This document shows positions 3,806 to 29,432 of a stretch of 64,000 nucleotides of DNA, piece by piece. Below the pieces are notes generated by a model that saw only the letters and a list, made by a program, of their open reading frames with translations, was not told where the DNA came from and made no database searches. The stretch lies in NCBI GenBank assembly GCA_047495785.1, contig JBLDXI010000019.1:2604001-2668000 (forward strand), written 5' to 3'. The position numbers and the translations under genes were made by a program. This DNA comes from Lepidodermella squamata. Taxonomy: Eukaryota > Animalia > Gastrotricha. Each line of letters starts with the position of its first letter. Positions within the stretch are counted from its first letter, which is position 1.

Positions 3806-6788
3806 TTAGGTGGGAATACGTCCATCGATGCGCACGCGGTTTTTGACGAGTAGTTCCCAAATCCGGTCCACTGCTTTAGTGCTCACGGTAATAGCAGCTT
3901 GCGTAACAGCAGTAGTTGAGACGGTACTAGTTTGTGTCGATTGGGTAAAGCTAGTCGAAAAGGTTGAAGTAACTGCTGCCGTGCTTGTTCGAATAGTTGT
4001 CGTTAGAGAGGTCGTTGTAGTCGCTGCGATTGTTGGCGCGATAGTTGTAGATGGCCGATTCGTTGTAGTTGTAGTCATTGGAGGGATCGTCGTAGTCGCT
4101 GTGGTTGTTGTAGGAGCGCGCGTTGTAGTCGGTCTAGTCGTTGTAACTGTGGTAGTAGTGGTCGTCGGTACCGTAGTTACTGTTGTTGTGGTTGAGAATG
4201 TCGTAGTAGATGTCGTGGCTGCAGTCGTCGTACCATATTGACCTAGTGCTGCTGGTAATTGGCACATGAATTTGAAGGTTTGACCTGGCAAAGTATCGGA
4301 GCCTGCCCAGCCTCCTCTGTTGTCCATAACACCCTTGATACTTGCAACGTTCGTGTCCGCTTTTAATACCATTGCGATTCTCGTAATTTGTGGCTCCCCA
4401 TCGACCATATCAAATGTGTCTGCGGAAGAAACCGTCTGATTTGTGTCAGCCCATAGCCATGAAGAAGTAGCTTTGGAAACAAATGCGATATTTAAGAACG
4501 TTCAAATCTAATTGTCTAAGAATTACCCAAATTTCTATACAAGCCGACCCACATGTTACCAGCATTTAACCTGTTGGCTGTTGTTCTGGCGAAGATCACC
4601 AATGGCTCAGTTTTAGGCGACCAAAAATAGGAATTATTGTTTGCTGCACATTTCTGCACAGCATTTTCGAACGTCGAAGATTCATTGAAAAATCTGAAGC
4701 AATTTCCGTTGAACTTTATCCAGTTATCATTTGGGCATTTAGCACATGCCAAAGAATATTCGCAAATATAAGCACGTGGATCATTGAACGCAGTGGCAGG
4801 CCCAGCAACCCACATGCCTGCATCAGTCAATGCCATCCCGAAAGCGAAATCTCTTATGGGAAACGGCGGGCTTGAGAATTTGAGCCAAGGCAGATTTGCC
4901 GAGAAATAAGTTCCATCAGTTCCATTACGTTTGAACCTTGGTCCGAGCGCAATATTTACGCCATCCATCCATTGGAAAACTCCATCTGAAACGATATCTT
5001 TGTAATTGTGATATTATAGAAATAATCTTAACCTGGGTCATCCACGTAATTATCTGCTACGCTCCAGTAAATACTAGTATTTCCAGATGATCGCCTAGCC
5101 CAGTCCTCCAGACCTATCCAGTAGTCTTGGTTCGGCGAGGCAATCTTTTCGGTGACGTATTTCCATTCTGATGGTGAGTTGGGGACGAAATAATGCGCAC
5201 CTTTTTCCGTGCATTTCTGCAGGCCGACCAAGTAGTGCTCTGGCGATCTATGTAACATTTGTACAAATAATTCACATATAAATGCAACAATGAATCACGT
5301 GTCGAATCAAATCGCGAAGAATGATTTGTTTTCTATTTCCTTATGGCCTATGCATATTGTCTAGAGCCCATCAAAGCGAGAAGTCTCGTTGAACGTACGT
5401 TTGAGCGAAGTAGCAGCTGTCGAAGCATGGATTGTACGTGTATCCAACCGGGCAATTGACAGATTGAAGACATGGTAATTTGCAAGCATCATCAGGTATT
5501 GCAATCGGGCTTGTGATAGTTGAAGATGAAGATGAATCTGTAAGGCCTGACGTAGCAGGCAACTGGCACCCGCCAGAATATGGATCTGTGTAGTTCAGCC
5601 ACCTCAAGCTTCCATCAAAATCTGAAGGTTTCTGCATGTCTGCATAATCTTTGCCGTCAGGAGTTATGCGAGCAGTGTTTTCATAGTAGAAGCTAGGTTC
5701 CTCGAATCTTGCATCTATGGCATCGGCTGGGATCATTGTTTCATTCTTGTCGATCCACAAGTATGCTCGAGCTATAAGGGTTAACGTCAAAGATATGAAG
5801 ATTAATTTCAAATTAACGAACCATTTAAATCTTGCCACATGCCGACGTATGAATCAACGTTCAAGCGCTTTATCTGAGTTCGAATGAAGATGCTTACACC
5901 TTCTGTTCGCGGCGCCCATAGATCAGCAGGTGGTGACAGCGATCTGCAGTAGTTGTACTGGTTCCAGTAGGTTGTTACCTTGCCCGTACTTGTCAGGTAG
6001 CACGTGTCGAGAAATTTTACCCAATTAGGTGGGCAGGTTGCGCAAGCCTTTGAGTATTCGCAAATGTAATTTTTCTGAGGATCGAATTTATTCTCATATC
6101 TGGCACCCCACAGATTCGAGTAATCCAGCCATACGTTAATATCATCTGAATTGGTGCTTTCCAGGAACGGAAGCCATGTCTTAGAGGCCTCGTTGTAGCT
6201 AGAAGACTGATGTGTCCACTTTGGCCCCATTCCTGGCGTGGAGTCATCCATCCATTGAAAAATGCCGTCTAAAAATTGAAGTCTTATAACGAGGGAAACA
6301 AAGGGCTTTCGTACACACCCGGATCTGTTTTGTATCCAATCGTATTGAATGGCCAGATTGCAGTTCCTGCTGATCTGCGAGCCCAGTCTTGTAAGCCAAT
6401 CCAATAGTCATTTCCTGTGGCCAGCATACCAGTGATATTCTGCCATTCTTCTTGCGAGTTTGGCACAAACAAATGAGCACCGACATTGTTACACGTTTGA
6501 GCCGCCGTCAAATACTTCGCTTTTCCTCTAGAAAAACGAGTAATGATTACGATATAATGATGTTGTTATTGATGATGAAACAAACATTGAAACCATGTAA
6601 CAGCTGTCAAAGCAGGCTCGGTAAGTATAGTTAGGTGGGCAGATCTGGGAGACATTCAACGAGCAGCTTGGGCTGCAGGACGTGGCCTGTGAATCAACCA
6701 GTTCGGCAAGTAAGGCGATTGAAATACTCATGATGACAGAATTCAACACAAGACGATTCGAATTTCCCGTAATAAATTGTTTATCCAT
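3806..6788 (-). CDS. Secreted 4xCTLD protein with Thr-rich stalk and C-terminal tag, copy B (multi-exon)
   Basis: ORFs 6528-6788, 6284-6511, 5808-6404, 5371-5838, 5028-5258, 4516-4968 and 3806-4408 join through short GT-AG introns. The protein ends TKAVDRIWELLVKNRVRIDGRIPT*. Confidence 0.9.
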
Positions 6789-7945
6789 CTGGACCCTTAA
6801 AGGAAAATCTTATTTTCCTAGTTTTAAATTTTCATTTAGGGCTATAAGGAGAAATATTTATGCCTAAATGTTGACTAAAAGATGACTAAAAAAATTCACT
6901 ATAGGTTTAAGCGATAAAAATAATGAATTAATGAATTAAAAACACTTTTACTGTACTTATAACCGTTTTCCTCGGTCCTTCTTCGGAGCTTGGGACCTCG
7001 GTTCATGCGGTAATTTGTACAGGAAAAGTTTTTCTGTATTCCGTGCCATCCAGGATTATGTCAGACTGGCTTGAGGTATGAGCAGCATAGAATCACTTTA
7101 ACCTTACAGACATGTCAGTGCATCAGAGCCAGAAAAACTCGAAGTGCAAGCTTAATATTAAAGCCGCAATCCTTGGACAGACTTGCGCTTCGAAATAATT
7201 TATGTCTTGTTAACACCTAGTCATGCTGAGGCCTGAATCACTTGGAAGAGCGGCAGTGTACAGGAATCTGCTTCTTAATTATGCAAGAATTATACAATGA
7301 TTCTGAGAGGTAGCCGGGAATTTTGATCATAACTCACTGTTTATGAATTATTGAAATTCCGCTGTCAAGCGCAACTGTAAAAAATATGTACTACGACTTA
7401 AGAATCGCAAAACGCCGCCCAGATTAGGACAATTATGCATGAGAAGCCGTGGACAACACTTATTTGTATCCAGCATCTAGTCACCAACTAATTTGAAAAT
7501 TTTCCCAGTTCTGTACTCATACACGCGAAACTCAATGGTAAATTTATTTTAAAACGAAACTTTCCGTTTCATGCAGTGTCTTCTTATTAATCTTGGACAT
7601 TTAATCTTGGAATAAATGAGGCGGGACAGAATTTTCATCATTTTTCAATCTCCTCCGAGCGATGGAAATGTGACATTTATCAGATTAATTCGGAATGTCA
7701 TTTTCTTTATCTCCTTTCAAGTACAATTCACCATGAATGGCTTTATTCAAAATTTAATGAACATCAAGCATTGATGTTGAAACACATAGGTATAATTGAG
7801 TACTGGATATTAACAACTGAAATAAAACTAAAAATAAAACTAAAAAAATACATGAAGTTCGAAAAAGTTATCTTAGTCTTGTGTAAGATATGATTACAGT
7901 TCGCTTTGCATTATGAATGCGCGTCTAATAATGGAAAGTAGCGAC

Positions 7946-10900
7946 TCAGGTTGGAATACGTCCATCGATGCGCACCCGGTTCTTGACGAGTAGTTCCCAA
8001 ATCCGGTCCACTGCTTTAGTGCTCACGGTAATAGCAGCTTGCGTAACAGCAGTAGTTGGGACGGTAGTAGTTTGTGTCGATTGGGTGAAGCTTGTCGAAA
8101 AGGTTGAAGTACCTGCTGCCGTAATAGCAGCCGTGCTTGTTCTAATTGTTGATGTTGAAGGGGTACTTGTAATCACCTTGGTTGTTGTAGGAGCGGGCGT
8201 TGTAGTCGATGTAGTCGTTGTCACAATAGAAGTGGGGGTCGTAGTTGAGGCCATCGTTGTCGTGGTTGAGACTGTCGTAGTCGATGTCGTGGCCGCAGTT
8301 GTCGTGCCATATTGACCTGGCGTAGCTGACAATTGACACATCTGCCTTGAGGAAGATGTGTAGTTGAAGCTTGCCCAGCCTCCTCTATTATCCATAACAC
8401 CCTTGATATTCCCAACGTTTGTGTCCGGTTTTATGATCATTGCAGTTCTCGCGCTGGAAGGCTCCCCATCAACCATATCAAAGGCATCTGTGGACAAAAC
8501 CGTCTGATTGGTGTCTCCCCAAAGCCATGATGAAGTGTCTTGACAAGCAAATGCAATATTTAAGGCTCAAAACAAATATGAATAATTCGAAAAAGAAATT
8601 ACACGAATTTCGATACAAGCCGGCCATTATGTTAGTAGCGTTTATTCTGTTGGCTGTTGTTCTAGCGAAGATCAGCAATGGTTCGGTTTTAGGCGACCAT
8701 AAGTAGGAATTATCGATTGAGGTACATTTCTGAGCTCCAGTTATCAACGTTAGCGATTCATTTAAAAGTCTGAAGCAATTGTCGTTGAATTTTATCCAGG
8801 TAGCATTTGGACATTTTGCACAGGCCAGCGAATATTCGCATATGTAAGCGCGAGGCTCATTGAACGCAGAAAGAGAATTAACTGCCCACATGCCTGCATC
8901 GGTCAATGTCATCGCGAAAGCGAAATCTCTTATGGGAAACGGCGGGCTTGAGAATTTGAGCCAAGGCAGATTTGCCGAGAAATAAGTTCCATCAGTTCCA
9001 TTACGTTTGAACCTTGGTCCGAGCGCAATATTTACGCCATCCATCCATTGAAAATTTCCATCTAAAAAAAAACGCTGTATTTGCGAGCCAATATCACTGC
9101 AAGAATACAAACCTGGATCATTGACATAATCAGTTGCTACGCTCCAATACGTGCTAGTAATTCCAGCAGATCGCCTAGCCCAATCCTGTAAGCCTATCCA
9201 ATACTGCTGCGACGACGAGGCAACGTTTTCGGTGACGTATTTCCATTCTGACGGTGAGTTGGGGACGAAGTAATGCGCACCTTTTTCCGTGCATTTTTGC
9301 AGACTAATCAAATAGTGCTCCGCCACTCTGCAATTAGGCAGCATTTTAGTCATAAATTATAAACAGCCCACATTATTTTGACTTGCATGTTTAGCACTAG
9401 CATTAGTATACAACGGCAACGACAGTTAAAAAATACAATCACATCATCGCCATTCTGGATCAAAAATCCTCACTTTCTGGCAAATTCCCGCCATTTAGCG
9501 CTAATTAATGCCTCGTAGCGACGTAAACCCGAGGTCTAACTGCGTAAAAAAGAGGGCTGTGATCGAAAGAGTAATAATTTTTTTATAATTTATTTCAGCG
9601 TTATAACGCCGTTATAATTTTTTGTGGTGTCGCAATACATATTTTTTTATTATATAAACAATAATGACGATAATACACTGATGAGTGTATTTCATTGGGC
9701 CGGTTTTATTGCTAATATTCATGTGAGTGTTGTCGTCAAGGCATCAACCAGGAGAAAAATGTAGTGAATTATACTGATGGCAATAAATGGACAACAGTCA
9801 TACTGGCCTCAGATTATTTCCATAATTTTCTATCTCCTCAATTATACCGCGATAGCTTCCCTCTCGAATATTCGATATCTCAAGAAAGGATAAAAGAAGC
9901 AAACAGTTTAATCTTAATTTTTTAAGGTATTCCCTTTAGGTTACCTTTATGAGTAGAGCAAAAAAAGGTAAAAAAAGCAAGAAGAGCCGTCGTAGCTCTT
10001 CAAGCTCATCGAGTTCATCCTCATCAACAGCTTCGTCTCGTCTTGACGCTATATCTGAAGCTTCCTCGAAGAGGTCTCGTGGCAAAAATTGGACCCAGGG
10101 TGACGTGGCGGTTCTCATTTCTGTTTTAAAACAACCCTTCAATGACAAAGACTCATTCATGGCTATATTGAGCAACAAGGATCCGTCGACTCTCAAGGAT
10201 AGAGATTTGGCGACTGAGCGCCTCACGGACTTGTTTAATTCTGAGGTTCCGGACCGCAAGCGAGACCGCAAGCAAATAATCTCCAAGATAAACCAAATGA
10301 GAATCGCTGCAAGAGCCGAGATAAGTAAATATAACGCTAAGAGGTCGATATCAGGTAATGTGGAAATCGGTAATCTCTCCCCGTTTGCTGAATTGGTCCT
10401 GCAATATGAGCCTTCGACGGCCCTTCCAATCGATGGAGTGGAGGATAGCCGAGAGTTTCAGGAAGTACCTCTGAATTTGGCTCGTCGTAAAAGCCACGTG
10501 GATGTTATTCATGAGCTGCGGATGGAGGTCCTAGCCAAGGAGAAGTCGGCTTGGGAGGCTGTTGAAGCTGCGGCTAATATCCGAAAGGAGGTATTATCCA
10601 AAGAGAAATCGGCATGGGAAGCCGTCGAAGCCGCAGCAATTATCGTCGCCGAGGCGGGTAGAAGATTTTGCGAGAAATAAGAATGAATTTGAATTTTCCT
10701 AGAAGTATTTTTACTTTATTTTTAATTCCATTCTTCTCATGGCTATAGGTAATAATGCTCAGAAGTTACTACGATTATATTTCTGCCGATCGTTCACTTC
10801 GAAGAGAACGAGTTTTTAGACTGAGATCTGACGAGTTACGGAAATGGAGTGATGAAGAATTTTTCGAAAGGTACAAGTTCTCAAAGCAAACAGTTGTTGA

Positions 10901-13900
10901 GCTGGAAGAACGGTTGCGCCCCCATTTACAGCCGCGAAAGACTACCCGAAATAATGCGCTAACTAGCATGCAAGTTTTTTTGAGTGGCCTCGGCTTTTTA
11001 ACGTGCGCACCCTCGCAACGCTGCCAAGCAGATAAATTGGGCCTCCATCGTACAACGGTGTGTAAGAATGTTCACCTGGTGGTTTCTGCAATCGTTAGGC
11101 AGCTGAAAGACCATCTTAGCTTGCCCAGCCAGGCTGAAGCAAAATCTTTGGCGGAGGAAGCTTTCGGCAGAAGTGAAATCCCAGGTATACTGGGCATTGT
11201 TGATGGGACTCATATAAGAATACGACGGCCCGGAAAATGTGTACCGGACCCAGGATCATTTTGGTGCAGCCGATATAGTTAATAGCCTTTCCTTTCGAAA
11301 GCTTAATGCCTAATTAATTTATTATTTCAGACATGTATAGCATAAACTGCCTGGTGTTCGGTGATATCAACTACAAAATTAGATACGTGTGTGCAAGCTT
11401 TGCTGGTCTGGATATTTTTTTACGAGATTTCCGGAAATTTGAAACCTTCCTATCCTTTAGGTTCGGTTCATGACTCAGCTGTTCTGCGTGGAACCGATTT
11501 GCTCGAAACGGTGGAGAAGAGATATCAAAACATGCACATAATAGCTGATGGTGGCTATCCATGCCTAGAATCTCTTATAACTCCTATTGAGAACCCGAGC
11601 AACGCGGCTGAAAGAAAATTCTCGAAGCGTTTTTTGAAAATTCGACGGATAATCGAGTGCATTATTGGAATACTGAAAATGCGTTATGCGATTTTGCGCG
11701 AACACCTTTGTAGCCTGTTGCATACTGCATAACATCGCTATTGAGAAAAATGAGATAAATATTCGTTCATTGAAATGTTCGAAAACTGGCGGCGGCGATG
11801 TATCGACTTTCCAGCCTCTCGAGGGCGATGTTGAAATCAAAGCTGGATTCGCACGCCGTAAAGCTCTCATTTCACTATTCGAGTAACATGAATGAATAAA
11901 TACGTATTATCGATGAATTTGTAGTTTTTTTGAGAAAGAAATATATTTTTTTCGATAATCCTGGTCCATTCCTGCTATCCGTTCTCGTCATTCTAGTAGT
12001 TACAGTGTTCATTATTTTTTCATTTTTTTCGTAAATTTTGGTCATCCCTGTTATCCAGCTCATTCTTGTTATTCTAGTGGTTTCAGTGTTTCCTGCTTTT
12101 TTCCTTTTATCAATCAAATCGCATGCGTAATTTTCGAGTTTTCCAAGTTTTAAACGCTTAGAATTGAGCTGAAATCTGGAATTTTAAGAAAAATAGCCGT
12201 TATTCACTGCTGTTGAGCTCAATCAAACCCCAATCAGAGATCAATTGCCCTCTATACTTGCATTTTATATATTGCAGGCATTTTCTTATTTTTGTTTACA
12301 TCCAAATTAAAGAATGGGTGGCAGAAGCAGAAGCAGTTCGCGAAACGCATCGGGTCGAAAAAGAGGTGCATCTGCTGAGGATGATGCTTCAGAGGAAGCA
12401 GAGAAGAAAGTTCGAATTACTGCTAAAAACGCAACCATAACTCCGAAAAAATCCGCTGCTGAAAGCAAGGAGACCGTAGACAAAGGTGACGTCGATGAGG
12501 ACCAAGACGAAGGCGAAGAAGAGGAGGAGCAAGACGAAGAGGACGACGAGGACGAAGAAGAGGAAGAGGATAACAAAAGCAGGCGAGATCACACAGCCGC
12601 AGCGCCAAAAAGCGATGATGAGGGGCCATCATACGATGCCATTAGACGAGTGAGCGAAAAATTCCCAGTCGTTAAATCGTGGTACCGAAAACGCGAGCTC
12701 AAAAAAGTATTGAAATATATCTTCTTCCTAATTGGTCAAGATGCAAAAAGATCGGCGTGCTTTGGGAATTTATTGCTCTTCCGGCGTGAATGCTGGCCCG
12801 AATTTCCGGGGAATATAAATAGAAGCATCGATTCTGTGAATCAAATCGCTTCAAAAATTATAGCCTTGGCGAACAAAGATTTCGATGCAGCTGCCAAGAT
12901 AGTTGAAAACTGGCCGCGTGATTGACATGAACTATTTTTTGATGTGTTGACGTGATGGGTGCATTATTAAATCTCGATATAGAGGTGAAGGAAGTACAAT
13001 GCTGTGGGAGAATACGTACTTGAATGAGTAAAAGTTCGTTTAAAAATAATGATGGAAATTACCTTTGGATTTTTGTAATATGATAAGCTAGTGAAATTAG
13101 TAAACATTAGTGGCAAAAAACAGGTCATGTAAAGAGCCCCTATTTTTGCTGCGCAGCACACAAATATACATAGCTGGCTATCTTTATTATTTATTACGCA
13201 TTGCAAAAAACTTGGTAAAATTTCTTGTGATTATAACGGCGTTATAATGGTGTTATAAATTTTATTTATGTACGATCACAGCCCTCAAAGTCTATCATAC
13301 CAATCATAAGAGAAAATGAATGAATTTTGTGCAACAGCATGCGTCGACGTTGCATTACCTATGCGTGATCCATAACGGTTAGGAATGCGGCGACCCGTTG
13401 CAAGCAGTGATAAAGTTTAAAAGACTAGTAATTTTCGCAAATACAGCAACATAAAATGTGTCCATCCCTGGCAGCTCATCTGAGAGCTAAGATCGCACCC
13501 TGAGTGTGCATAATAACTATTTACGAAATTTTAAATTTTACGAAAGAGCTAATTAGAAGCGGCTATGTCGAAAGCTAGCTAGATTGAACTTACGTTGAAG
13601 CAAAGTAGCAGCTGTCAAAGCACGAATTGTACGAGTATCCGGTCGGACAGTTTACAGATTGAAGGCATGGCAATTTGCAGTCATCATCAGGAACTGTCAT
13701 AGGCTTTGTGGTAGTTGAAGTTGAAGATTTGTCCGATAGGTTTGATGTTGCAGGCAACTGGCAACCGCCCGAATACAGATCAGTATAGTTCAGCCACCTC
13801 AAACTTCCTGAAAATTCCGACGGAGACCTCATGGCTGAATAATCATTGCCATCAGTAGTTATGCGAGCAGTGTTTTCAAAGACGTAGTTAGGTTCATCGT

Positions 13901-15011
13901 ATCTTGCATCTATGGCGTCGGCTGGAATCATTGTTTCATTCTTGTCAAGCCACATGTACGCTCGCGCTTAGGGATCAGGATAAATATAGGAAGTTAGTCA
14001 AACAATATTCAATATACTTACCGCTGATATCTTGCCACATGCCAACGTATGAATGGACGTTCAACCGCTTTATCTGAGTTCGGATAAAGATGCTCACGCC
14101 TTCTGTTCGCGGGGCCCATAGATCAGCAGGAGGTGACAGAGATCTGCAGTAGTTGTACTGATTCCAGAAGGTCGTACTCAGACCAGTACTAGTCAGGTAG
14201 CACATGTCGAGAAATTTTGTCCAATTACCTGGACAAGAAGAGCAAGCCTTGGAGTATTCACAAATGTAATATTTCTCCGGATCAAACGCAAACTCGTATT
14301 TGGCCCCCCACCGGTTCGAGTAAGTCAGCCATACGTTAATAGCGTCTGATCTGGTGATTTCCAGGAACGGAAGCCATGGCCTAGAAGCCTCGTTGTAGCC
14401 GTAAGACTGCTGTGTCCACTGCGGCCCCATTCCCGGCGTAGAATCATCCATCCATTGAAAAACACCGTCTAAAATTCGAAGAAGCCATGAATTTAGTTTT
14501 AATTATAAAATATGTTGTGTAGACCGGGATCAGTTTTGTAGCCAGTTGTATTGAATGGCCAAACTGCTGTTCCTGCGGTTCTGCGAGCCCAATCTTGTAA
14601 GCCAAACCAATACGTGTTTGTCGTGGCCAGCATTCCAGTAACATTTTGCCATTCTTCTTGCGAGTTTGGCACAAACAAATGAGCGCCGACATTGTTACAA
14701 GTTTGAACAGCCACCAAATACTTTGATCTCACCCTAGGAAAAGTCTGAATGATGATGGTCTAATGTTGTTATCGATGATGAACAAACGTTGACACTGAGT
14801 AACAGCTGTCAAAGCAGGCTATGTACGTATAGCCAGACGGGCAGATCCTCGAGACGTTCAGCGAGCAGCTAGGGCTGCATGTTGTAGTTTGTGCATGGGC
14901 GAATTCAACAAATAAGCCGATTGAAAGGCTCAGGATAACAGGTGTACAGATAGGCTTCTTCAGACAGCGAACACTCAGCATCTTATTAGTTTTCCATACT
15001 GGCTTTTCCAT
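7946..15011 (-). CDS. Secreted 4xCTLD protein with Thr-rich stalk and C-terminal tag, copy C (Harbinger element in the intron ~9329-13591)
   Basis: ATG at 15011 (MEKPVW...). Exons lie in ORFs 14769-15053, 14499-14732, 13975-14451, 13590-13955, 8478-9353 and 7946-8497. The C-terminus is identical to copy B. Confidence 0.88.
9949..10680 (+). CDS. Harbinger Myb/SANT-like (trihelix) DNA-binding protein
   Basis: RGKNWTQGDVAVLISVL...LTDLFNS...KRDRKQIISKINQMR matches the Myb/SANT pattern of Harbinger ORF1. It has a basic/Ser-rich N-terminus and a duplicated EVLxKEKSAWEAVEAAA coiled segment. Confidence 0.8.
   Translation: MSRAKKGKKSKKSRRSSSSSSSSSSSTASSRLDAISEASSKRSRGKNWTQGDVAVLISVLKQPFNDKDSFMAILSNKDPSTLKDRDLATERLTDLFNSEVPDRKRDRKQIISKINQMRIAARAEISKYNAKRSISGNVEIGNLSPFAELVLQYEPSTALPIDGVEDSREFQEVPLNLARRKSHVDVIHELRMEVLAKEKSAWEAVEAAANIRKEVLSKEKSAWEAVEAAAIIVAEAGRRFCEK
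10755..11886 (+). pseudogene. HARBI1-like DDE transposase with two introns (11278-11330, 11406-11460) and a frameshift near 11705
   Basis: Motifs GIVDGTHI, YSINCLVFGD..KIRYV...GSVHDS, IIADGGYP, RRIIECIIGILKMRY and ACCILHN. The last motif is out of frame and about 10 residues appear to be missing before it. Confidence 0.88.
12314..12925 (+). CDS. Uncharacterised third ORF inside the Harbinger element (basic N-tail, acidic tract, helical C-domain)
   Basis: Intact 203-aa ORF inside the TIRs, on the same strand as the other two ORFs. I recognise no family. Confidence 0.6.
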   Translation: MGGRSRSSSRNASGRKRGASAEDDASEEAEKKVRITAKNATITPKKSAAESKETVDKGDVDEDQDEGEEEEEQDEEDDEDEEEEEDNKSRRDHTAAAPKSDDEGPSYDAIRRVSEKFPVVKSWYRKRELKKVLKYIFFLIGQDAKRSACFGNLLLFRRECWPEFPGNINRSIDSVNQIASKIIALANKDFDAAAKIVENWPRD

Positions 15012-15563
15012 CCTTCCCTTTAGATCGAAAATGTTTCTAGTTATATAATTCAATTATGGACAATTTTTATATATCTCTATGGGTGATGAAACTATTTACC
15101 AGCTATTCTATCTATTTTTAATCTGTACTTGAGTTTTTAACCATTAATCATTTATCCTGGAAAATGGGCTTTTAGAGCCAAATTCCAGCATAACAGCTTT
15201 ATTAATTAGTTAACCGTTAACCTTCCCACGTGGGGCCGTTTTGGCCTATCGTCAGGTCATTTTAAACGCTATTTAATCGTTGATTTTGATTTCGTCAGTT
15301 GCTATTATGCAGCTTAAAGCATCACGTCTGGTTCGATATTTGCTGATGCATAACTGAATACCTGAATAATACATCAGAGTCGCAAAATGACGCCAATTTT
15401 GTTTGAGAAATGTTTTGAATCCAGCATCCAGCCATCAGCTAGTTTACATTATTTCCCCGTTCTGTACCTATACACGCGAGATTCATTGGTTAATTTATTT
15501 GAGAACGAAACGTTCCTTTTCATGCAGCAGTATCTATAATATATCTTGGCAACTGGAGCAAAC

Positions 15564-18500
15564 TCATCCCACCATGGGAACGCCATACTTGATTAGAAGC
15601 TTCAGAATTTCGTTTTCAGCCTTGCTTGTTGTTGCAGCGGGTATTTCTGTTGTCGTTGAAACCGTCGTTACTGCTGAAGATGCGGGAGTTGAAGTCGTCG
15701 TTGAAACAGTTGACGGTAGCGTAGTAGCGCTGCTTGCTGTGGATAATGTGCCAATTGTTGACTGTGTGGTCGTTGACATAGTAGTCGGAGTACTAGTAGC
15801 TGTAGTCGTAGAAGAGTTTGTGGTTGTTACTGGCTGTTGAGTGGTGGTGGTGGTAGACCACATTGTTGTTGTCGTCAAAGAGCTCGCGGTAGTATAAGTT
15901 GTTGCAGAAGTTGAAGCCGTAGCCCCAGTAGATACAGTAGAATTTGTGGCTGTCTGGGCGTTATTGTTTTGCACATTTGGCGATGATGTTACCGAGGAAT
16001 TAGTTATTGCGGCAGAAGTAGTAGTGGTCCTAGTCGTCGTAGCAGTCGTAGTATTCGTAGTAGTAGGAGCAGGCGTTGTAGTTGTCGTAGTAGTAGTCGT
16101 AGTAGTTGTAGTCGTGGTTGTAGTTCCATACTGACCCACAGAAGCCGTCAGCTGGCACATTTGGTACGCTCTCAATGTCCCATCAACCGTTGACCAGCCT
16201 CCCATGTTGTCCAGGACGCTCGAGAGAGTTAGCAGGTTAATGTCAGGCTTCAGCAGCATATAGTTATTCGAAGAGGGCTGATTCGCAGCTAAATCCAGGG
16301 CGTCAGAGACAGTCAAAGTAGCATTATCATCAGCCCATTTCCAGCCATCTACCGTAGAGGGTTAAAAAAACATTCAATAAAATATATTTCATCCTTACTG
16401 TTCTTGGTTAATCCGACCCAGAGAGAATCTGAATTCAACCTATTAACTATTGCTCTTGCGTAAATCACTAGCGGTTCGGTTTTCGCTGCGAATCCAACTG
16501 AGTTATTGTTAGCTCTACATTGTCCAAGTCCATTATCCGGAGTATATTGAGTAGCAAGAAGCTTGAAACACTTATCAATGAATTTGTTCCAACCGCTAGG
16601 GCAAGTATAGCATGCAAGCGAGTATTCACAGACATAGTGATTTGGGCCTGTGAAGCTTGATTTCGGCTCTACCAACCATTTTGAGTTTACGTTCTCCAGC
16701 GTGAATGCAAAATCCCGCCCAGGGAACGGCGGACTTTCAAACCTTAGCCACGGCATAGCTGGTGAGAAGTAAGTATCATTCGCCCGTGAAAACCTAGGTC
16801 CGATTGGGTTGGCCAGCCCATCCATCCAAGTGTAAATACCATCTGGATCATAAACATAAATATCAAATTTTTATGACTTAAGCATGGCAAAAATGAACCT
16901 GGATCGCTGACATAATTAGCTGCGATGTCCCAGCCACTTCCTTCTGACCTTCTAGCCCAATCTTGGAGCCCGATCCAATATTGGCGACTGGTTTGCGTGA
17001 TATTCGTAAACGCACTCATCTCAGATAAAGAGTTGGGTACGAAGAAATGTCCGCCCATTTCCGTGCATTTTTGCAACGCGACCAAATAGTGTTCCGCAGT
17101 GCTAAACAGTGCGCTTATTTTAAATTTGATAAGAATGGAAGCCTACCTCGATGCTGAGTAGCAACTATCAAAGCAAGGATAGTAACTATAGCCTGATGGG
17201 CAAGGCACTGCAAATACACAATTGTACACTATCAATCGACGGAAATAATGCCATGAAATTGTACCTGATATTGAACACTCATTTCGGCACGCTGTAGCTG
17301 GGTTAGGCGGCGCCGTCGTTGTAACGGGCGGAGTGCTAGTTGTTGTGTTATAACCCGGAGTTGCAGGTATTTGACATCCAGCGAACTCTTTTTCCTGAGC
17401 TTTGACCATACGCCAACTGGCTTGAACATCGGCAAAGGAAACAACCTTGCTGTAATCTCCGCCATCTTTCGACACGATTACGTACACATCATCCTTATCA
17501 CTTGGGTCGCTGGAGACCATGTCAAACAAATCCGTTGGAATCATCGTTTCGCCGCTCTCGTACAACATAAACGCTGGACGAAAACGATTGATTGTAAGTA
17601 CAACGAAAAGCAATGCATACTCTTGGTGTTGGGCTCCCGCCATATTCCAATGAACGCATCTTTACCATTATCTTCCACTTGCGTTCTGAAAAATATATTT
17701 GTCGCTTCTGTTCTCGGCGTGATAAGCTTTGCGGATGGTTGAACTGAATTTGTACAATATTTGACTTGATCTTCGAATTTTCGATCATTGCCAGTGCTGA
17801 CCAAATAGCAGGTGTCAAGAAATTTCACCCAGCCCCCCGATGTCGGGCATGTCATGCATGCATTGGAGAATTCACATATGTTAAACTTTTTATCGTTGAA
17901 TTTTGAGGTGAACGTAACTCGCCAGCTCCCTTGAGAGTTCTGAAGGTATGCGATTGGCGTGGCTGTGGTACCTGTGGTAGGTTTGTTTGTGAACATCAGC
18001 CATGATTTCGACGACTCTGTGAATGGGCCGGTGGCATTTCCTTGCCACGTGGGCCCCATAGCAGGCGTAGAATCATCCATCCACTGGAAAATTCCATCTG
18101 TGGACGAGTAACTCTAACTCAGCTTGGTCAATTTAAATGAGTTACCTGGGTCTGTATTGCTGATCCCATTAAATGGGGAGGATGAGCTCCCAGTCCCGCG
18201 TCGAGCCCAATCTTGGAGTCCAAGCCAGTAAGTGTTTGCTGTTGATAGACGGTTGGTGACGTATCCCCACTCTGCTTGCGAGTTCGGCACAAAAAGATTA
18301 CCCCCATAGCCACCACACGTCTGAACAGTCGACATGTACGTGTCAGCGCTTGAAAGCAAGAAAAATCACTTGCATTTATCATGAATGGGAAGAATACTCA
18401 CGTCGGCGTAAAATAATAGCAGCTATCGTAACAAGGCTCGTAATAAGTATAAGCAGAACAGACTTGGGTTTTTGTTAAAGGGCAGTTGTTGGAACACGAC

Positions 18501-18568
18501 TGACCCGTGGCCCTTGCAAGGTAATGAAATAGTACTATGAAAACACTCAACGAAACAGTTTGCAACAT
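15564..18568 (-). CDS. Secreted 4xCTLD protein with long Thr-rich stalk and C-terminal tag, copy D (multi-exon)
   Basis: First exon read by eye: MLQTVSLSVFIVLFHYLARATGQSCSNNC...CYDSCYY, then GTGAGT. Later exons lie in ORFs 18114-18359, 17541-18080, 17143-17643, 16744-17085, 16349-16825 and 15564-16316. The protein ends ENEILKLLIKYGVPMVG*. Confidence 0.88.
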
Positions 18569-19430
18569 GTTCGTCCGACTTTTTCGGGTGTTCTTCTTAT
18601 TTTTTCTGTGCGATTTTAAGGTTTACCTCATGTATTGGCAGGCTTCTTACCCCACTCGCGCCAACAAAAGGATTGGTATTCTATACATGGTTATACTCAC
18701 CGAATCCGAACTTTCTTTCCAAATCCTACTTAGAGAAAGGGGGATGGCCTGGAAGAAAGGACAGCCTACATTACAACGCGGGCTTACAGGCTACTTGTGC
18801 AAACATAACACAGGGCTAAAAAAAAGTAGGATAAACATCAGCTTATGGATCCCTTTGGATAAGAAAACTTAAAATTGTTTCAGCGAGAGGATATTGCGTC
18901 ATTGCCATTAGACAAACTTGCAACTGTCTCAACACTTTCAAAACTTGGTCGTCTATATTGATGGCTAGCGTGGTTATCTTCGCTAATCGAAAGTGTCTCG
19001 CCTGCCTAGGTATGATGCGGTGCTCGGGCCAAATTTGAGAATTGAAGCTTATTTGGCAAATTTTTAGCACTGTGACACTTTGAAGAACACATAAATCTGA
19101 TACCTGATGTCAAATCAGATATCGCATTTGTTCTAATGAGAACTTTTCTCTCATTCTTCGAAAATTGTAACTCTCAATGTTGCGAGTCATTTCCTCACGG
19201 GATTCCCTATTCTTCCAACTCATACTTGACCAGATATTTTATTGGGTATCTCTTTACAAAATTTGCCTATAGGTGAAATCATTTGTAACTAGATGCTAGG
19301 CATTACTAAAACTGTTTGTGATGATGTCTGTAAAATTCTGAGACCAAAACAATGAATTTAATGCTTCGCAAAATTAGATATATATTGAACGAAGGCCTAT
19401 TGTTATGAATAATTATGCAAATATTGAACA

Positions 19431-20581
19431 TCATGTTAATATTATGAAAGCCACGACGTTCGAGACAACATACGCGACTATCGCAATAAAAAATGCTGCT
19501 TTGTCGATGAGAGCGTAGAATTTCACAGAACTTTCCAGACAGCGCAGCTTCCATTTCCTACCAGCGATACTTGGGTAAGATGCTATGAAACCGCACATGG
19601 CTGATGCGTAGATCACAACAATTGTAGCTAGAATCGTCTGTGATAAGCAGTAGTTCGCGGCAAAGACAGGCTGCGGCGTTTTAGGCAAACTAGCCTGAAC
19701 ATCACCTTGCAGCACAAAGATTGACAGCATCACCGTACAGGCGAACGTAGGCCTGTCGGAAACATCGGCGGGAATAAAGAAAGAAGATAGGACTAAACAG
19801 CTCAAAATCAAACTCGGAGCGTAGAGACTTGCCAAGTAATAATCAGGTTTACGTCTGAATTGAAATTCAAAAATCGCCTCGGAAAGGTTGACCGCCATGC
19901 CTGTGCCAATGAAACGGTTTGCTGAAGTTCGATCGTTAATAGCATCATGTTCCCATCCGGCATTGGTCGACATGAAAGGAAAGCCAAGAGGTGGTAACAA
20001 TCCAGCTTCAGCTATGTATGCATAGTGGGCACTTTGTGCGAGACCAAATACGAATTTGCAGGTTTGCGAATCGAACGGGAAATAGGTTAAATCGAAACTG
20101 CAGTAGGAAGAAAACTTTCCTTCAATAACGCCAGTTACTTTACCGTGATTCGCCGGGTAAATTTTCATCGTCCTGGCGTATCCTTCGAATATTGCTGAAC
20201 AGAGTTCGAGTGGAATAATGGCGGCCACCAGTAAAGATCTGGATTTTCATTAGTCAATTCCCGGATAATAGCAGGCCACTTCACATCTGACGAGCTCGAT
20301 ACATTTCGGTAAAGATTAGCAACGCATGTCGATTCCCATGTGACTACCAAGGCGAAATCTAGTGTGATTGTTTCAGCTAAATCATCGATTGATATGAACT
20401 TCTTTGGCTGCAATGAGATCGTTACTTGCGTTGGTTCGCCTTCCAGCTCTGTAGGCGAGTTGATATTAGGTCCCAACCAACAGTTATCCAGAATTGTTTG
20501 CGCTGGCCTGAAACTTTGAAAATTAATGCCAGTGTTTCTTGCCCCAAGAGGTAACAGAGAAAAGATAAGAGCATAAAACAT
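19431..20581 (-). pseudogene. Intronless Cys-loop ligand-gated ion channel subunit, split by a frameshift near 20165-20200
   Basis: Signal-like N-terminus, WWPPLF, Cys-loop CSFDLTYFPFDSQTC, FRRKPDYY before M1 and four TM segments. The coding sequence spans two overlapping ORFs in different frames (pseudogene or sequence error). Confidence 0.8.
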
Positions 20582-21243
20582 GTCAGATTTAATAAAAATG
20601 TGATAACCCTTCGAGTTTTAGAGTGCGAGCCTCTAACGCGTGGCAAAAGCCCAAAGCGTCTGTATTTCAAAGTCAAATATTTGAATAGCGTGTTCAGTTC
20701 GCAGTAGATAACGTAAAAGGGCGCGGCAATAAAATTCAAGCGGAGACAGAATTTATTTTACTGCTTGAATCGCCCACTGCTTGAGATTTTCAAAAAAATC
20801 ATTCTATAAAAAACCACCATGTTCACGCTTCAGCGGAATTTGCCACTCAATTTAATGGAATACATAAAATTTGAAGCAAAGTGATTTTAAGCTTCTCGGA
20901 TTGAAACATTTTTGTCACTTTCATATCATTCTTGGATCCAACGAGAATATGATTCAGAACAAATACCCTTTCGAATGACTGACGATAATGTTACTATTTG
21001 TCCCCAAAAGTTTATTTGATATATGGTTTACGATGAACCAGTTAGATCGACGTCGTCGTATAGCAAGAGAAGGAAATAAAATAAAAATGAAAACGCCCCT
21101 AACAAATAACGAGGGAGTACTGTTTACGTATTTCGCAGAACTCAGTTTGGCTAACCGCTGTTATAACCGGCAACCGGACATCTAGAGTTATATTGCATCT
21201 TTACTAAACAAATGAAAGTCACTGGCGTCACAGTATGTGGAAT

Positions 21244-21819
21244 TCACCCAGCAACAGGAACGCCGTATTTCAGGAGCAGCTTTAAAATGTTATTGCTACT
21301 CGTTGATGTCGTCGGGTTTGCACCTGGAGAACTTGAGGCCGTGCTACTGGTAACAGGCATAGGGGTTGTAGTTATGGTTATAGATGTTGGGGTTGGCGTT
21401 GTGGTTGTTGTTGTCATGGACAATGAGGTTATGCTAGTAGTATAAGTTGAAGGTGTGCTACTAGTGCTTGAAGACGAGTTTGGACAAACTTCGTATTTTA
21501 TGCATTGCGAGTACCACTCGCTTTGATCGACACAGCTGCTTCCAAGCGGGCAGCACGTCGCTCCAGTATAGTTTTTGCCCCCACATTTGCTGTCGAAAAC
21601 ATTACTGCACGATCGATCGGTTGCAGGCTGGCATTGCGAGTTGTACGCATCCGAGTAAATGCAATCCCACCCGATAATGCAATCAGTTGGCCCTGTATAA
21701 CCTGAGCCGCCACACTTAGCATATCGGCCAGCGCATTGCAGATCCGCCGATACTAGAACCGGAAGAATCGCAAAAATTGCCGATAATCTCATCAGAGACG
21801 TTTTCGCCCGATGTGCCAT
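21244..21819 (-). CDS. Secreted 2xCBM1 (fungal-type cellulose-binding module) protein with S/T stalk and C-terminal tag
   Basis: Signal peptide; CGGSGYTGPTDC...YNSQC and CGGKNYTGATCCPLGSSC...WYSQC match the CBM1 consensus. The protein ends NNILKLLLKYGVPVAG*. Intronless. Confidence 0.88.
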   Translation of the reverse strand: MAHRAKTSLMRLSAIFAILPVLVSADLQCAGRYAKCGGSGYTGPTDCIIGWDCIYSDAYNSQCQPATDRSCSNVFDSKCGGKNYTGATCCPLGSSCVDQSEWYSQCIKYEVCPNSSSSTSSTPSTYTTSITSLSMTTTTTTPTPTSITITTTPMPVTSSTASSSPGANPTTSTSSNNILKLLLKYGVPVAG

Positions 21820-22546
21820 CAAGTTTTTCCGGACTATTCTTCACTCGACCGAGTTGCAGACGTTTTAAATATAACTGTAATATTGGACGTAGCATAGCCT
21901 CCAAGCTAATTGATTTAAAGCTTTTACCTCAAAATAATTTCGCTGCCTAGGTATAAATGAATAATTCAATGAACAACGATAATATTTTGGATTTCATGTC
22001 ATCGAAAATGCTCACCTGTGTAACCTTCCCAGCAATTATGTTTCATTATAATTTTTATATTATCAGGCTAACCTCTCCTGGGCGTTGCAGCTTTCGATTT
22101 ATATAAATAATAATAATGCACTATTTGTTTCGGGAAAATGACAGCGTTTTCCAGTGACTGCAATATTGAATGTACGTGCTCTCATCGATTAGACGATTTT
22201 CACGTTATATCGTCACGTGGCGAGAAGGTCTGTGACTTTTGCTGATCTTTTTTCGGACAAGTGAACTTCATAACTTGTATCGTAGTCAGTAAAATACAGG
22301 GTTTACTGTGTCATGAATTTCGATTTTGAAAGAGCGATTAAACTGCCTTTGATTTTGGACCTTTAACCAAATTTATCAATAACAAATCGCATGTAAATCA
22401 AAATCGAACTTACAAGCTTTCTTATATTTATTCACCCTTAACAAAAGCAAACGCATGGATCCGAACATTTCGAACATTTTTACCGGTTTTAGTTTTCATC
22501 CAGAGCAAGGCTCGCGGCATCTCTAGTTGATACTAAATAAGAAACA

Positions 22547-23428
22547 TCAATTGTCTGTCTTAGCAGGTAATCCAACAATGGGAACGCCAAATTTGATGAG
22601 CAGCTGCAAAATTGTATCCTCAGCTGTGGTAACAGGATTCACCGGCGATAAATCAGAATCCACTATAGTATACTGAGAGCGAATGGTCGACGTGGCGCTC
22701 GCAGCTGCTGTAGAACTTGAGGCTTGGCTGTTCGTTGATGTGGAGCTTGTAGAAATCGGAGCTGTATTGCTAGTGACTGACGTAGCTTTCGTAGTAGTGG
22801 ATGTATGAGCTGGACTACTTGTAGACGTGGTTGTAGGCCTCGTTGTTGTAGAAGTCGCCGTTGAGCTACTTGTTGATGTCGGGCTCGCAGTTGTAGAGGT
22901 CGCGGCTGTGCTATTCGCCAACGAGGTGGTTGCCGCTGTTGTCGTAGTTGTTGATGTCGCAGTTGAGCTCCTTGTCGTCGTCGTGGTTTTAGCTGTGGTG
23001 GTACTCGATGTCGTTGGCGTGACTGTACTTGTGCTCTTTGGTGTTGTAGTGGTAGTTGTTGTTGTTGTTGTGGATGTTGTCGTGGTTGTGCTACTTGTAG
23101 TTGTAGCTTCACACAAAGTGTAAAGTGTGCATTGGGAGTTCCACTCGCTCTGGACGATGCAGGAGCTTCCAAGTGGGCAACAGGTCAATCCAGTATAGTT
23201 TATGCCTCCACATTGGCCGCCGTTAGCATCATTACTGCATGATGGGTCAGTTGCAGGCTTGCATTGAGCGTAGCTTGCATCTCCAACGCAAGACCACCCA
23301 ACATTGCAATTTGTTGGCCCTGTATAACTCCCGCCGCCGCATTGATTCCAATTGGCGACGCATTGTGATTTCGCCAAGATTAGCACAGGAAAAATTGCAA
23401 CAACTTGCAATGAACTAAACAGATACAT
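22547..23428 (-). CDS. Secreted 2xCBM1 protein with long Thr/Ser stalk and C-terminal tag
   Basis: Signal peptide; WNQCGGGSYTGPTNC...YAQC and QCGGINYTGLTCCPLGSSC...WNSQC. The protein ends EDTILQLLIKFGVPIVGLPAKTDN*. Intronless. Confidence 0.88.
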   Translation of the reverse strand: MYLFSSLQVVAIFPVLILAKSQCVANWNQCGGGSYTGPTNCNVGWSCVGDASYAQCKPATDPSCSNDANGGQCGGINYTGLTCCPLGSSCIVQSEWNSQCTLYTLCEATTTSSTTTTTSTTTTTTTTTTPKSTSTVTPTTSSTTTAKTTTTTRSSTATSTTTTTAATTSLANSTAATSTTASPTSTSSSTATSTTTRPTTTSTSSPAHTSTTTKATSVTSNTAPISTSSTSTNSQASSSTAAASATSTIRSQYTIVDSDLSPVNPVTTAEDTILQLLIKFGVPIVGLPAKTDN

Positions 23429-23818
23429 TTTTATTTGTTGACCAATTCAAGAAAATTTATCTGACTAGTCGCAGCGCAGCTTGTATCCCTACATTGCAGA
23501 ACCTTAATATCAAACGGATGAAGCTTTCACGATATTAAATCCGGCTTGCGGGGTACTGATGTCGCGTTAAGAATGAACTAATGTTCAAGCATCTTAGTTT
23601 CAATCTTATCTCATGCCGAAGCCTCAACGTTATTACTTCCGGCGCGAATTTCCAGGCGAGATTTTTGCGATTTGCGAGGCATTCGTTCGCGTGTGGAACC
23701 ACAAATTATGATAAATAACAATTATTAGTTTGTCAGCTTTTATAGCTCGTCTATTCACGGATAACTTGGTCCTTATGCTACTGAAGAAATCATTAATGAT
23801 GAATGTCTTAGGCGGAAA

Positions 23819-26600
23819 TCAATTTCGAGTCCGCGACCTCCCATCCATCGGAACGCCATACTTCAGCAACAGCTTTAGTATTTTATCTTCCACAGTTGCA
23901 CTAGCTACAGCTGCTGTTGTAGTGGGTTCCGTTGCTGTAGTAGTCACAGCTGTTGTTGAAGTGGTTCCCTTTGTTGTAGTAGTTACAGCCGCCGTTGAAG
24001 TAGTTCCGGTTGTTTTAGTGGTTACAGTTGCTGTTGTAGGAGTTCCCGTTGTTGCAGTAGTTGCAGCCGCTGTTGAAGTAGTTCCCTTTGTTGTAGAAGT
24101 TACAGTTGCTGCCGAAGTAGTTACCGTCGTTGTAGTGGTTACAGCTGTCGTTGTAGTAGGTGACGTTGTTGTAGTTGTTGTTGGAGCAGCCGTGGTACCG
24201 TAAAGACCAGGGGTAGCCGCCAACTGGCATATACTTCGCAGCAAGGCTGATTGGTTATACCCTATCCAGCCGCCCATATTATCGATCACTTTACTAATCC
24301 GATTCACATCGCTGTCTGCTCTTAAAGCGACCGCTAATTCATTTTGCGTTGGCTCGGGAGTTCCCATGTCATATGCTTGGTTGGCGGAAAGAGTTGTGTT
24401 AGAGTCAGACCAAACCCAAGAGCCAGCTACAAATAATTTATAATACAATAAAGGCTAGTTGAATTCCCAAACGAACTTGATGAGGATCTCCAGATTCCAA
24501 TCCACATATCGGGTAAATTCAACCGGTTAGCGGTGGATCTAGCGAAAATGATCAAATCCTCAGTTTTTGGCGCCCAAGTGACTGATCTATTTGCAGCTGT
24601 GCATTGCGCACCTCGATTTGTAAGAGTATAAGTGCCGTTAAGTAGCAAAAAGCATTTCTCATTGAATTTAACCCAGCCAGATGGGCAGGTCGAGCATGCC
24701 TTTGAATACTCGCATACGTAATGATTCGGGCCCAGGAAACTTGCATTAGGGGTAACAAGCCAATTCGAGCTGGTGAAGTTCAACGTGAAAACAAAGTCAC
24801 GACCTTTGAATGGAGGGGCGAAGAATTTGAGCCATGACATCGAGGATTCAGGGTTGTAGTAACTCCCGTCGGTCATGTTTCGGAAAAATCTAGGGCCGAA
24901 GGACCCACTTGATCCGTCCATCCACTGATAAATACCATCTGAAAGACGATTCATAAAAATATTAAAGAAAATTGCGTCTCTAACCGGGGTCTTCGACGTA
25001 ATTGGCTCGGAAATCACCCCAAGCGCTACTGCCTCCTGATCGCCTGGCCCAATCTTGGAGGCCGATCCAATATTGCCGGGAAGAATCCGCCAAACTTTCG
25101 GCGAAGTAACGTAGCTCTGAAGGAGTATTCGGGACGAAAAAGTGGGCCCCTTGCTCTGTGCACTTTTGAAGAGCTATAAGATAGTGCTCCGAAGCACTTA
25201 TGAACATTTTATTGTTAAGTTGAAAGTTGGGGACAATGGGAATACTTACTTTGATAGAAGGTAGCAGCTGTCCTGGCAAGGGTTGTAAGTATATCCATTA
25301 GGACAATTGACCGAGCTCAGACACATAGTCTGACATTTCTCGCCAGGGTCCGGAAATTGAGTAGCCGTTGCCGTAGTACCAGCATTGGTTGTTGTATTGT
25401 ATCGCTGTGTTGCAGGCATTTGGCAACCAGCAGAAAATATACCATTGGCAGTTATAATTGTTCGCCACAATCCAGACAAATCAGCCAAATTTGCCACGGA
25501 AGAGAATGCCTTGGAGTCCGCAGCTACCCTTGTTGCATCCTCCTCGAAATCGCTCGGTTCGTCTTTCTTCATGTCGACTGGATCTGTCGGCAGAATGGTA
25601 TCGTTCTTGTCGAGCCAGAGAAATGTACGCGCTGCAGAACATAAAGAGACGAGTAATTTTAGATTAGAACGAATAAAGCTTACCATTCAAATCCCGCCAA
25701 ACACCAATGAGTGTTTGGAGACCTGACCGCTTAATTTGAGTTCTCACAAATATATCGACCGATTCAGTTCTAGGAGTCCACAGCGTTCCTTCAGCGTGGA
25801 AAGATCTGCAATAGTTGTGCTGCTCCCACAATGTCGCATCGATCCCGTTGTTGACGAGGTAGCATTTGTCAAGATATTTCACCCAGCCAGTAACCGGACA
25901 AGTTGCGCAAGCTTTCGAGTATTCACAAATGTAGTTCCTCACAGAGCTAAATGAGTTTTCGAAGTTAGCAACCCATCTCTGAGATTGATAATCAACGTAA
26001 ACCGCGAAGTGGCTTAAGGTTGGCGATTGTTTGAAGGGCAGCCAAGGTTTCGAAGGATCTGTGGAATTCGTTAACCAATTTGGACCCATCGCTGGGGTAG
26101 AATCATCCATCCATTGAAATATTCCATCTTGAAAATTAAATGCTCACAGTATTTCTCAGAAATCTGCTGTAACTTACCGGGGTCTGTTATGTAGTTCGTG
26201 CTGTTCTCGCCGATGGTCCAGTTTCCGTTTCCGGCGGATCGACGAGCCCAATCTTGTAAGCCGATGTAGTACTTGAAAGACGTATCCAGCTTCGAAGTCA
26301 CAGATTGCCATTCCGCCAGCGAGTTTGGCACGAAGAAGTGACCCCCGGCTGTGTTACATTCGAGCAAATCCACCATGTATTGACTTGAATTTCTGGAATA
26401 AAAAACATTCGTTTTTTTATAATTGAGACAGTTTTTAGCTACCTCGAAATAAGATAGCAACTGTCATAGCAGGCGTCGTAATAGAAATTTGAAGGGCAAA
26501 TCTGATTCTGCGAAAGAGAACATGCAGGACTGCAAGAAGGATCGCCATTGACGGAAGCCACGATAAAGCCGCAAAGAGCAAGTAATTTTGCGCTCATCAT
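23819..26600 (-). CDS. Secreted 4xCTLD protein with Thr-rich stalk and C-terminal tag, copy E (multi-exon)
   Basis: First exon MMSAKLLALCGFIVASVNGDPSCSPAC...CYDSCYL read by eye. Later exons lie in ORFs 26071-26460, 25664-26110, 25246-25686, 24980-25279, 24427-25017 and 23819-24448. The protein ends EDKILKLLLKYGVPMDGRSRTRN*. Confidence 0.88.
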
Positions 26601-29195: not shown

Positions 29196-29432
29196 ATTGT
29201 CCATTATATCGCAAATTAGCTGCTGAAAAAATGTCCCGGCTTTTTAATGAGGCAATGGCGTCAAATTATCACATAAAAATGAGAACGTGACACGTGTTTA
29301 ACCAGTCCAATTACCGCTTCGCACTTCATCGAGTCCTTATTAATTGTGTTTATAACAGGCAAACAATGGCCAGAAGGGCGCTTATTTCACACTTATTCTC
29401 ACTTTTTACCTCTTGCTGGTAACGCCGAATTT

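Follow-up and report, generated by a model that had tools for sequence, protein, structure and literature searches.

What keeps a short peptide at the end of secreted glycan-binding proteins whose heads are unrelated? The question is raised by a 64-kb stretch (C19:2604001-2668000) of a 121-Mb animal genome with short introns. This stretch is the window, to which plain positions below refer. Its minus strand between 59 and 26600 is occupied by a tandem array of five genes with four C-type lectin-like domains (CTLD) each, called A to E, and two genes with two carbohydrate-binding modules of the CBM1 type, called CBM1-1 and CBM1-2. Their proteins end in variants of one peptide, here termed the tail. 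A first-pass annotation of this DNA had seen in the tail a modular display or sorting platform into which newly acquired binding modules could be plugged. The finding reported here is a lineage-specific lectin family and one head swap, not a new sorting system. With somewhat more confidence than doubt, we read the tail as the conserved C-terminal peptide of this single young family of stalked lectins, which would dock or anchor the base of the stalk.

Proteins A to E share a layout of signal peptide, four CTLD-like domains arranged as two pairs, a Thr-rich stalk and the short tail (Table 1). The CBM1 genes consist of one exon each, encoding a signal peptide, two CBM1, a stalk and a tail like that of the lectins; stalks in the family are 65-180 residues long. 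The six tails whose residues had been quoted were all recovered, letter for letter, on the minus strand, each closing an open reading frame (ORF) that runs through a Thr/Ser-rich stalk, and the count of six genes becomes seven once the tail of gene A, just left of the window, is added. In the layout ascribed to the six proteins, stalk and tail hold throughout and the heads are backed by Pfam, partly weakly for the CTLD. The CBM1 heads match PF00734 with 63.1 and 50.0 bits (cut-off 20.6), with two modules per protein; Lectin_C (PF00059) reaches 28.4 bits in gene C (cut-off 22.6) and 20.7 bits in D, and there are weak matches to the CTLD-like UL45 and A33R families. Read by eye, hydrophobic N-termini resembling signal peptides are found in B, D, E, CBM1-1 and CBM1-2, and a similar stretch in the first exon of A. 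The intactness of gene C is uncertain, because a transposon-bearing gap of ~4.2 kb separates its 5' and 3' halves; the gene would either have a 4.2-kb intron or be split. The transposon in this gap is of the Harbinger/PIF type (9936-11886, plus strand), with a Myb/SANT-like ORF and a DDE_Tnp_4 transposase in pieces, and a further ORF lies at 12314-12925.

The tail comprises ~17 residues, x-I-[LW]-x-L-L-[LIV]-K-[YFN] and then [GQR]-V-[PR]-x-x-G, with 0-7 variable residues behind them. I, L, L, K, V and the final G are invariant across the aligned tails, in the set of six and then in all seven. The tail of gene A (NRIWNLLIKYQVPLDGRFST) is intermediate between the 'RIWELLVKNRVRIDG' variant of B and C and the 'ILKLLLKYGVPxxG' variant of the others, and the tails of CBM1-1 and CBM1-2 are of the D/E type. 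After the final Gly, two of the seven proteins stop directly, four continue as G-R-x (GR-IPT, GR-FST, GR-SRTRN) and CBM1-2 reads GLPAKTDN. The tail contains no Cys and has a net charge of 0 to +2. Its longest uncharged hydrophobic run is 3-4 residues and a Lys lies within the motif, which confirms the earlier statement that it is too short and too charged for a transmembrane helix or a glycosylphosphatidylinositol (GPI) signal. Such a signal or a C-terminal transmembrane anchor needs ~15-20 hydrophobic residues without interruption, and no hydrophobic ORF follows downstream, so both were rejected. From the seven-sequence alignment, AlphaFold2 (AF2) gives one helix, AEDTILQLLIK, at residues 21-31 of the last 45 (pLDDT ~87), with coil after it. 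D, E and both CBM1 genes reach a hydrophobic moment of 0.54-0.65, within the top 3-4% of shuffles. The tail is thus predicted to form a moderately amphipathic helix of 11 residues and then a turn; the helix-turn of the first-pass annotation is retained, with an amphipathicity that stands out only in D, E and the CBM1 genes.

Within this genome the tail is firmly private to a single tandem cluster of ~25 kb. When the whole genome was scanned in six frames with a 21-position tail profile, the seven cluster sites (C19:2603018-2627890) came up with E values of 3e-11 to 2e-5, a confinement to one locus that the first-pass annotation had itself counted against its platform. The degenerate DNA pattern for KLLxK[YF]GVP occurs at three sites in the genome, all inside the cluster. 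The next-best match of the profile is an ankyrin repeat with E 0.7. What resembles the tail there is the second ankyrin helix and its loop (consensus ...VVKLLLEHGADVN...), matched as ILELLIKFGTPFD and RIMKLLLDYGAEID; the score is at chance level, and half a repeat would not fold. An ankyrin origin was rejected, since the similarity to these two segments is that of chance.

Beyond this genome, a profile of five last exons was compared with 1.84 billion representative proteins, a search in which a tail of at least 35 bits would have been listed; it returned seven matches, either Thr-rich or to unrelated CTLD, and none of them tailed. Word-indexed protein searches with the tail region of CBM1-2, the last exon of E (a poor query, swamped by Thr-rich words) and the CTLD3-4 ORF gave no matches. 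No database relatives of the lectin heads were found with the CTLD3-4 ORF or the last-exon profile; in the genome itself, CTLD paralogues lie outside the cluster at C6:80190-82175, C32:4282202-4284252 and C28:946349-951443, with others on C4 and C24. A Pfam scan of the bare tails up to E 10 gave no match, Ank included, a feature search of the ESM Atlas with the tail gave no usable match, and no description of such a C-terminal motif was found in the literature. The tail is a family-private C-terminal motif, undescribed so far.

The sequence of the tail is under constraint. Over its 17 codons the proportions of synonymous (pS) and nonsynonymous (pN) differences were compared for divergent pairs, namely D, E, CBM1-1 and CBM1-2 with each other and these with A and B; pS is 0.54-1.2 and pN 0.13-0.36. 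Synonymous changes are 2-3 times more frequent than expected from the ~24% share of synonymous sites (P = 0.0002-0.02 per pair). Despite saturated synonymous sites (pS 0.4-0.9), D, E, CBM1-1 and CBM1-2 still agree in 10-13 of 17 aligned residues. Between D and E, pN is 0.13 in the tail and 0.32-0.46 in the CTLD exons at equal synonymous saturation. As read from these codon changes, purifying selection on the tail is no weaker than on the folded domains, and the claim that it is kept although the heads differ stands; the tail is in fact better conserved than the CTLD exons. Neutral divergence, which would have spoken against a function, is not what is seen, given the synonymous excess and the low pN. 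Since the synonymous sites of the tails have diverged, gene conversion is excluded. An RNA structure behind the conservation was also considered and rejected (z-score -1.4, with synonymous sites saturated).

That the tail is a mere relic, a unique sequence of recent ancestry or gene conversion beside fast-evolving repeats, is scarcely credible: B and C are indeed all but identical, with 96% nucleotide identity between their tails, and Thr-rich stalks, which diverge fast by slippage, would make any unique flank look conserved, but D, E, CBM1-1 and CBM1-2 keep their shared residues with synonymous sites saturated, and the synonymous excess (P down to 0.0002) rejects this account for the divergent pairs.

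The tails look like true C-termini. Tail, stalk and the last half-CTLD lie within one exon. The 390-1160 bp up to the next gene contain neither a hydrophobic ORF nor a conserved block common to the set, and a poly(A) signal, AATAAA or ATTAAA, follows the stop at 67-260 nt in six of the seven genes. One sequencing run (X1), guessed to be probable RNA and assembled into contigs of ~100 nt, covers E and CBM1-2 but not CBM1-1, with genes A-D left out. Its coverage tracks the limits of gene E, CBM1-2 and the Cys-loop channel gene that lies within the array, and drops to zero across CBM1-1 and 1.9 kb of intergenic DNA. Two error-free X1 contigs (23795-23847 and 23818-23870) span the stop codon of E collinear with the genome and unspliced, and X1 contains no skip joint at any tail. 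Splicing past the stops, which would have undone the reading of the tails as ends, was therefore not seen, on data that are thin and cover E and CBM1-2.

How did two unrelated heads come to share one tail? Another gene of the contig, L065 (C19:471015...), lies 2.1 Mb from the cluster; to its N-terminus the heads and signal peptides of CBM1-1 and CBM1-2 show 53% and 52% identity. Pfam finds in L065 two CBM1 and a GH9 cellulase, joined by a stalk. The heads of CBM1-1 and CBM1-2 are 58% identical to each other. The comparison shows the CBM1 genes to be chimeric by sequence, with signal peptide and two CBM1 from a CBM1-stalk-GH9 gene. Fungal-type cellulases are built of CBM1, an O-glycosylated Ser/Thr linker and a catalytic domain. 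L065 and the CBM1-tail genes are alike in the signal peptide, the two CBM1 and the Thr/Ser-rich linker; they differ in what follows, a catalytic domain in L065 and the 17-residue peptide of the lectin family in the CBM1-tail genes. The array would have grown to five four-CTLD genes by tandem duplication at one locus. A copy of the cellulase 5' module (signal peptide, two CBM1 and stalk) would have landed in the lectin cluster and joined the 3' end of the family, probably by recombination in the repetitive Thr-coding stalk, and the resulting chimera would have been duplicated to give CBM1-1 and CBM1-2. One swap and a duplication explain the two head types, and therefore no recurrent plug-in system is needed. 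The genes make a clear case of domain exchange across a repetitive mucin-type stalk, and the same route may also have made the head-stalk-channel genes of this animal, described below.

CBM1 has 30 matches in this genome. A further gene (L064, C25:1116954...) has by eye the CBM1-stalk-GH9 layout of L065, and another (L076, C3:1454245...) combines CBM1 and a Thr-rich stalk with a C-terminal domain that has no significant Pfam match.

What might the tail do? The base of the stalk is a catalytic domain in the parental cellulase and a selected peptide in the CBM1-tail genes. Without a fixed base an O-glycosylated stalk would be of no use, and the tail therefore most likely docks or anchors, which is our best guess at its role. 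Either a common partner protein would hold the stalk base non-covalently, or the tail would attach it in-plane to the surface of a membrane or granule; the heads would then point outward from the anchored stalk. Recognition by a common partner protein is a tentative proposal, well short of an even chance; in-plane binding to a membrane or granule would be rather unlikely, and self-association improbable. It is particular residues that are invariant and not a mere hydrophobic pattern, so specific recognition is favoured. The nearest familiar design is that of the collectins (MBL, SP-A), bouquet lectins whose stalk bears CTLD heads and ends in a short segment for assembly. In both, an extended stalk separates lectin heads from a short terminal segment, and gathering the bases would give multivalency. 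In the cluster, however, the heads are N-terminal, the stalk is mucin-like and not collagen, and the tail has neither Cys nor a coiled-coil neck. If the tail docks or anchors, it would be a compact, Cys-free mount for glycan-binding heads on a surface.

Several points weigh against this proposal. By hydrophobic moment against shuffles, the amphipathicity of the tails of A, B and C is ordinary, and a lone 11-residue helix would bind weakly. The RNA support for the C-termini is thin, and that X1 is RNA is a guess. That the tail was not found in other species counts for little as evidence of a private motif, because the heads are also without relatives and the lineage is poorly sampled. A complex prediction with four copies of the last 45 residues scored 0.01, which is no verdict and weighs neither way.

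Among the other explanations, a sorting helix for regulated secretion, bound transiently to the granule membrane, fares best and is still unlikely. Carboxypeptidase E and the prohormone convertase PC1/3 have C-terminal amphipathic sorting helices, and the predicted tail likewise is a short amphipathic helix ending a soluble secretory protein, with Lys and aromatic residues of the kind usual in interfacial helices. It has no homology to the carboxypeptidase E and convertase helices, however, and is about half as long, and the invariance of I, L, L, K, V and G fits stereospecific recognition better than transient membrane contact.

The tail could also be internal rather than terminal if transcripts were spliced onward, at least in CBM1-1, which ends 660 bp upstream of the Cys-loop channel gene. 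The product would be the two CBM1, stalk and tail fused to the mature N-terminus of a channel. A donor, GG/GTGAAT (GT at 21247-21246), is in phase with an acceptor (AG at 20539-20538) that lies 2-3 residues from the likely cleavage site of the channel signal peptide, and the joint would lead from ...KYGVPVAG to NTGINFQSFRP.... The weakness of the donor is no objection, genuine introns of the cluster having donors as weak (GTTAAG, GTGTGT, GTTCGT, GTAATT), and CBM1-stalk-channel genes do occur as single ORFs on contig C2. In these head-stalk-Cys-loop genes, such as L062 with four CBM1, stalk and ligand-binding domain (LBD), the CBM1 heads and mucin-like stalks are like those of the cluster, which has one channel gene inside it; they differ in that the stalk runs into the LBD in one ORF, with no tail motif at the junction, and no tail-like motif was found at the stalk-channel junction in ~60 channel loci. 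The channel gene of the cluster starts at an ATG of its own, with a signal peptide homologous to the ones in stand-alone paralogues (MFYALIF... and MLCALIF...), and its ~150 relatives are mostly stand-alone, with open frames of ~380-440 residues. The intron would be 710 nt long, against the usual 45-60 nt in the cluster, and none of the other six tails has an exon downstream or an in-phase donor. X1 holds no such joint, in a run that does not cover CBM1-1. Onward splicing is improbable on this balance. The reverse descent, of the tail as a relic of the N-terminal helix of a Cys-loop LBD, was also rejected: channel paralogues begin with ...DIWDFKPTETILANC... directly after the signal peptide, and no match above chance was found in ~60 channel loci, CBM1-channel fusions included.

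The invariant final Gly invites a reading as a processing site, either for trimming to Gly and alpha-amidation or for removal of a propeptide; it is the last residue in two genes and is followed by Arg in four, as such a site would have it. CBM1-2 does not fit, as no basic residue follows Gly in its GLPAKTDN. The P4, P6 and P8 positions of a monobasic site lack a basic residue, and there is no conserved cleavage site upstream of the peptide. Processing at this Gly is at best about as improbable as onward splicing.

More remote still is a variant of docking in which the tail would be a plug that holds free lectin and CBM1 stalks on a shared receptor, possibly a channel subunit, with CBM1-1 possibly a true splice fusion (donor 21247, acceptor 20538). 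A channel subunit comes to mind because of the many head-stalk-Cys-loop fusions in the genome and the channel gene inside the cluster. The arrangement would be an exchangeable, non-covalent counterpart of the fused, 'lectin-armed' channels.

The platform proposed at first, a general tag that plugs many unrelated secreted binding modules into one common base, is very unlikely and is largely refuted within this genome. It has in its favour that the tail is carried by two unrelated head types and is better conserved than the heads. Dockerin and cohesin, PEP-CTERM and exosortase, and LPXTG and sortase are systems in which such tags occur on tens of unrelated proteins and have a dedicated partner. 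The tail resembles these tags as a short conserved C-terminal element on differing binding heads. It differs from them in having seven carriers only, paralogous or chimeric and in one tandem cluster, in having none among the representative proteins searched, and in its partner: no candidate gene for one was found, the neighbours being a Cys-loop channel, two GH114 genes and two IIGP-like GTPases. One recombination event, with the duplication of its product, suffices for the second head type.

Table 1. Features of the lectin array and its surroundings; positions refer to the window unless a contig is named
Feature	Position	Strand	Description
Gene A, head exons	59..2778	-	4 CTLD-like; first exon 2458-2778; stalk and tail exon left of the window (L010:1492-2250)
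Gene A, tail	C19:2603018-2603071	-	~930 bp left of the window; reads ...NRIWNLLIKYQVPLDGRFST and stop
Gene B	3806..6788	-	Signal peptide, 4 CTLD-like, Thr-rich stalk, tail; first exon 6528-6788, last exon 3806-4408
Tail of B	3821..3871	-	VDRIWELLVKNRVRIDG; then RIPT and stop at 3806-3820
Gene C, 3' half	7946..9353	-	CTLD3-4, stalk, tail at 7961-8011
Gene C, probable 5' half	13590..15053	-	Signal peptide, CTLD1-2
Gene D	15564..18568	-	Signal peptide exon 18398-18568, 4 CTLD-like, stalk, tail; last exon 15564-16316
Tail of D	15567..15617	-	ENEILKLLIKYGVPMVG; stop codon immediately after
Cys-loop channel gene	19431..20581	-	Not a family member; own Met and signal peptide; sole candidate exon downstream of any tail
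CBM1-1	21244..21822	-	Single exon; signal peptide, 2 x CBM1, stalk, tail 21247-21297
CBM1-2	22547..23428	-	Single exon; signal peptide, 2 x CBM1, stalk, tail 22571-22621, then LPAKTDN
Gene E	23819..26600	-	Signal peptide exon 26439-26600, 4 CTLD-like, stalk, tail 23840-23890, then RSRTRN
Two GH114 genes	28416-29195, 29346-30218	+	Endo-alpha-1,4-polygalactosaminidase family; tandem, single-exon; 257 and 182 bits
Two IIGP/IRG-like GTPase genes	30509-31594, 33238-34497	-	Paralogous; PF05049, 50 and 54 bits
Reverse transcriptase ORF of a non-LTR retrotransposon	35314-37464	-	716 residues; RVT_1, 109 bits

The channel gene of the array is frameshifted near 20198-20228 in the assembled haplotype. 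In a second run (X2) an insertion of 7 nt (ACTTCCG) behind 20198, present in about half of the depth, restores a single ORF like those of the paralogues, and therefore one allele of the channel is intact and one broken. The Cys-loop receptors of this genome are a very large expansion, with 2530 Neur_chan_LBD candidates at first look. At least 150 are relatives of the channel in the window, mostly stand-alone frames of ~400 residues clustered on C23, C54 and C19. Three genes on C2 (L062, L063 and L079; C2:624750-641000) combine one to four CBM1, a long Ser/Thr stalk and a Cys-loop LBD in one ORF. The domains of L062 (four CBM1 and Neur_chan_LBD) were assigned by Pfam and those of L063 and L079 by eye; a further sequence of the same region, L066, is truncated just past the stalk.

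The two GH114 genes adjoin the lectin cluster, and each has by eye a hydrophobic N-terminus like that of a signal peptide. GH114 is a mostly microbial family, and the pair is possibly an old horizontal acquisition. Lectins, GH114 and IIGP-like GTPases together possibly form a neighbourhood of defence or feeding genes.

A last resemblance concerns the 3' flanks of D and C, which share a 114-nt block, 81% identical, on the minus strand (15414-15527 and 7463-7576). It lies at differing distances from the stop, 40-153 nt in D and 373-486 nt in C, and may be a shared element of the untranslated region or a repeat fragment.

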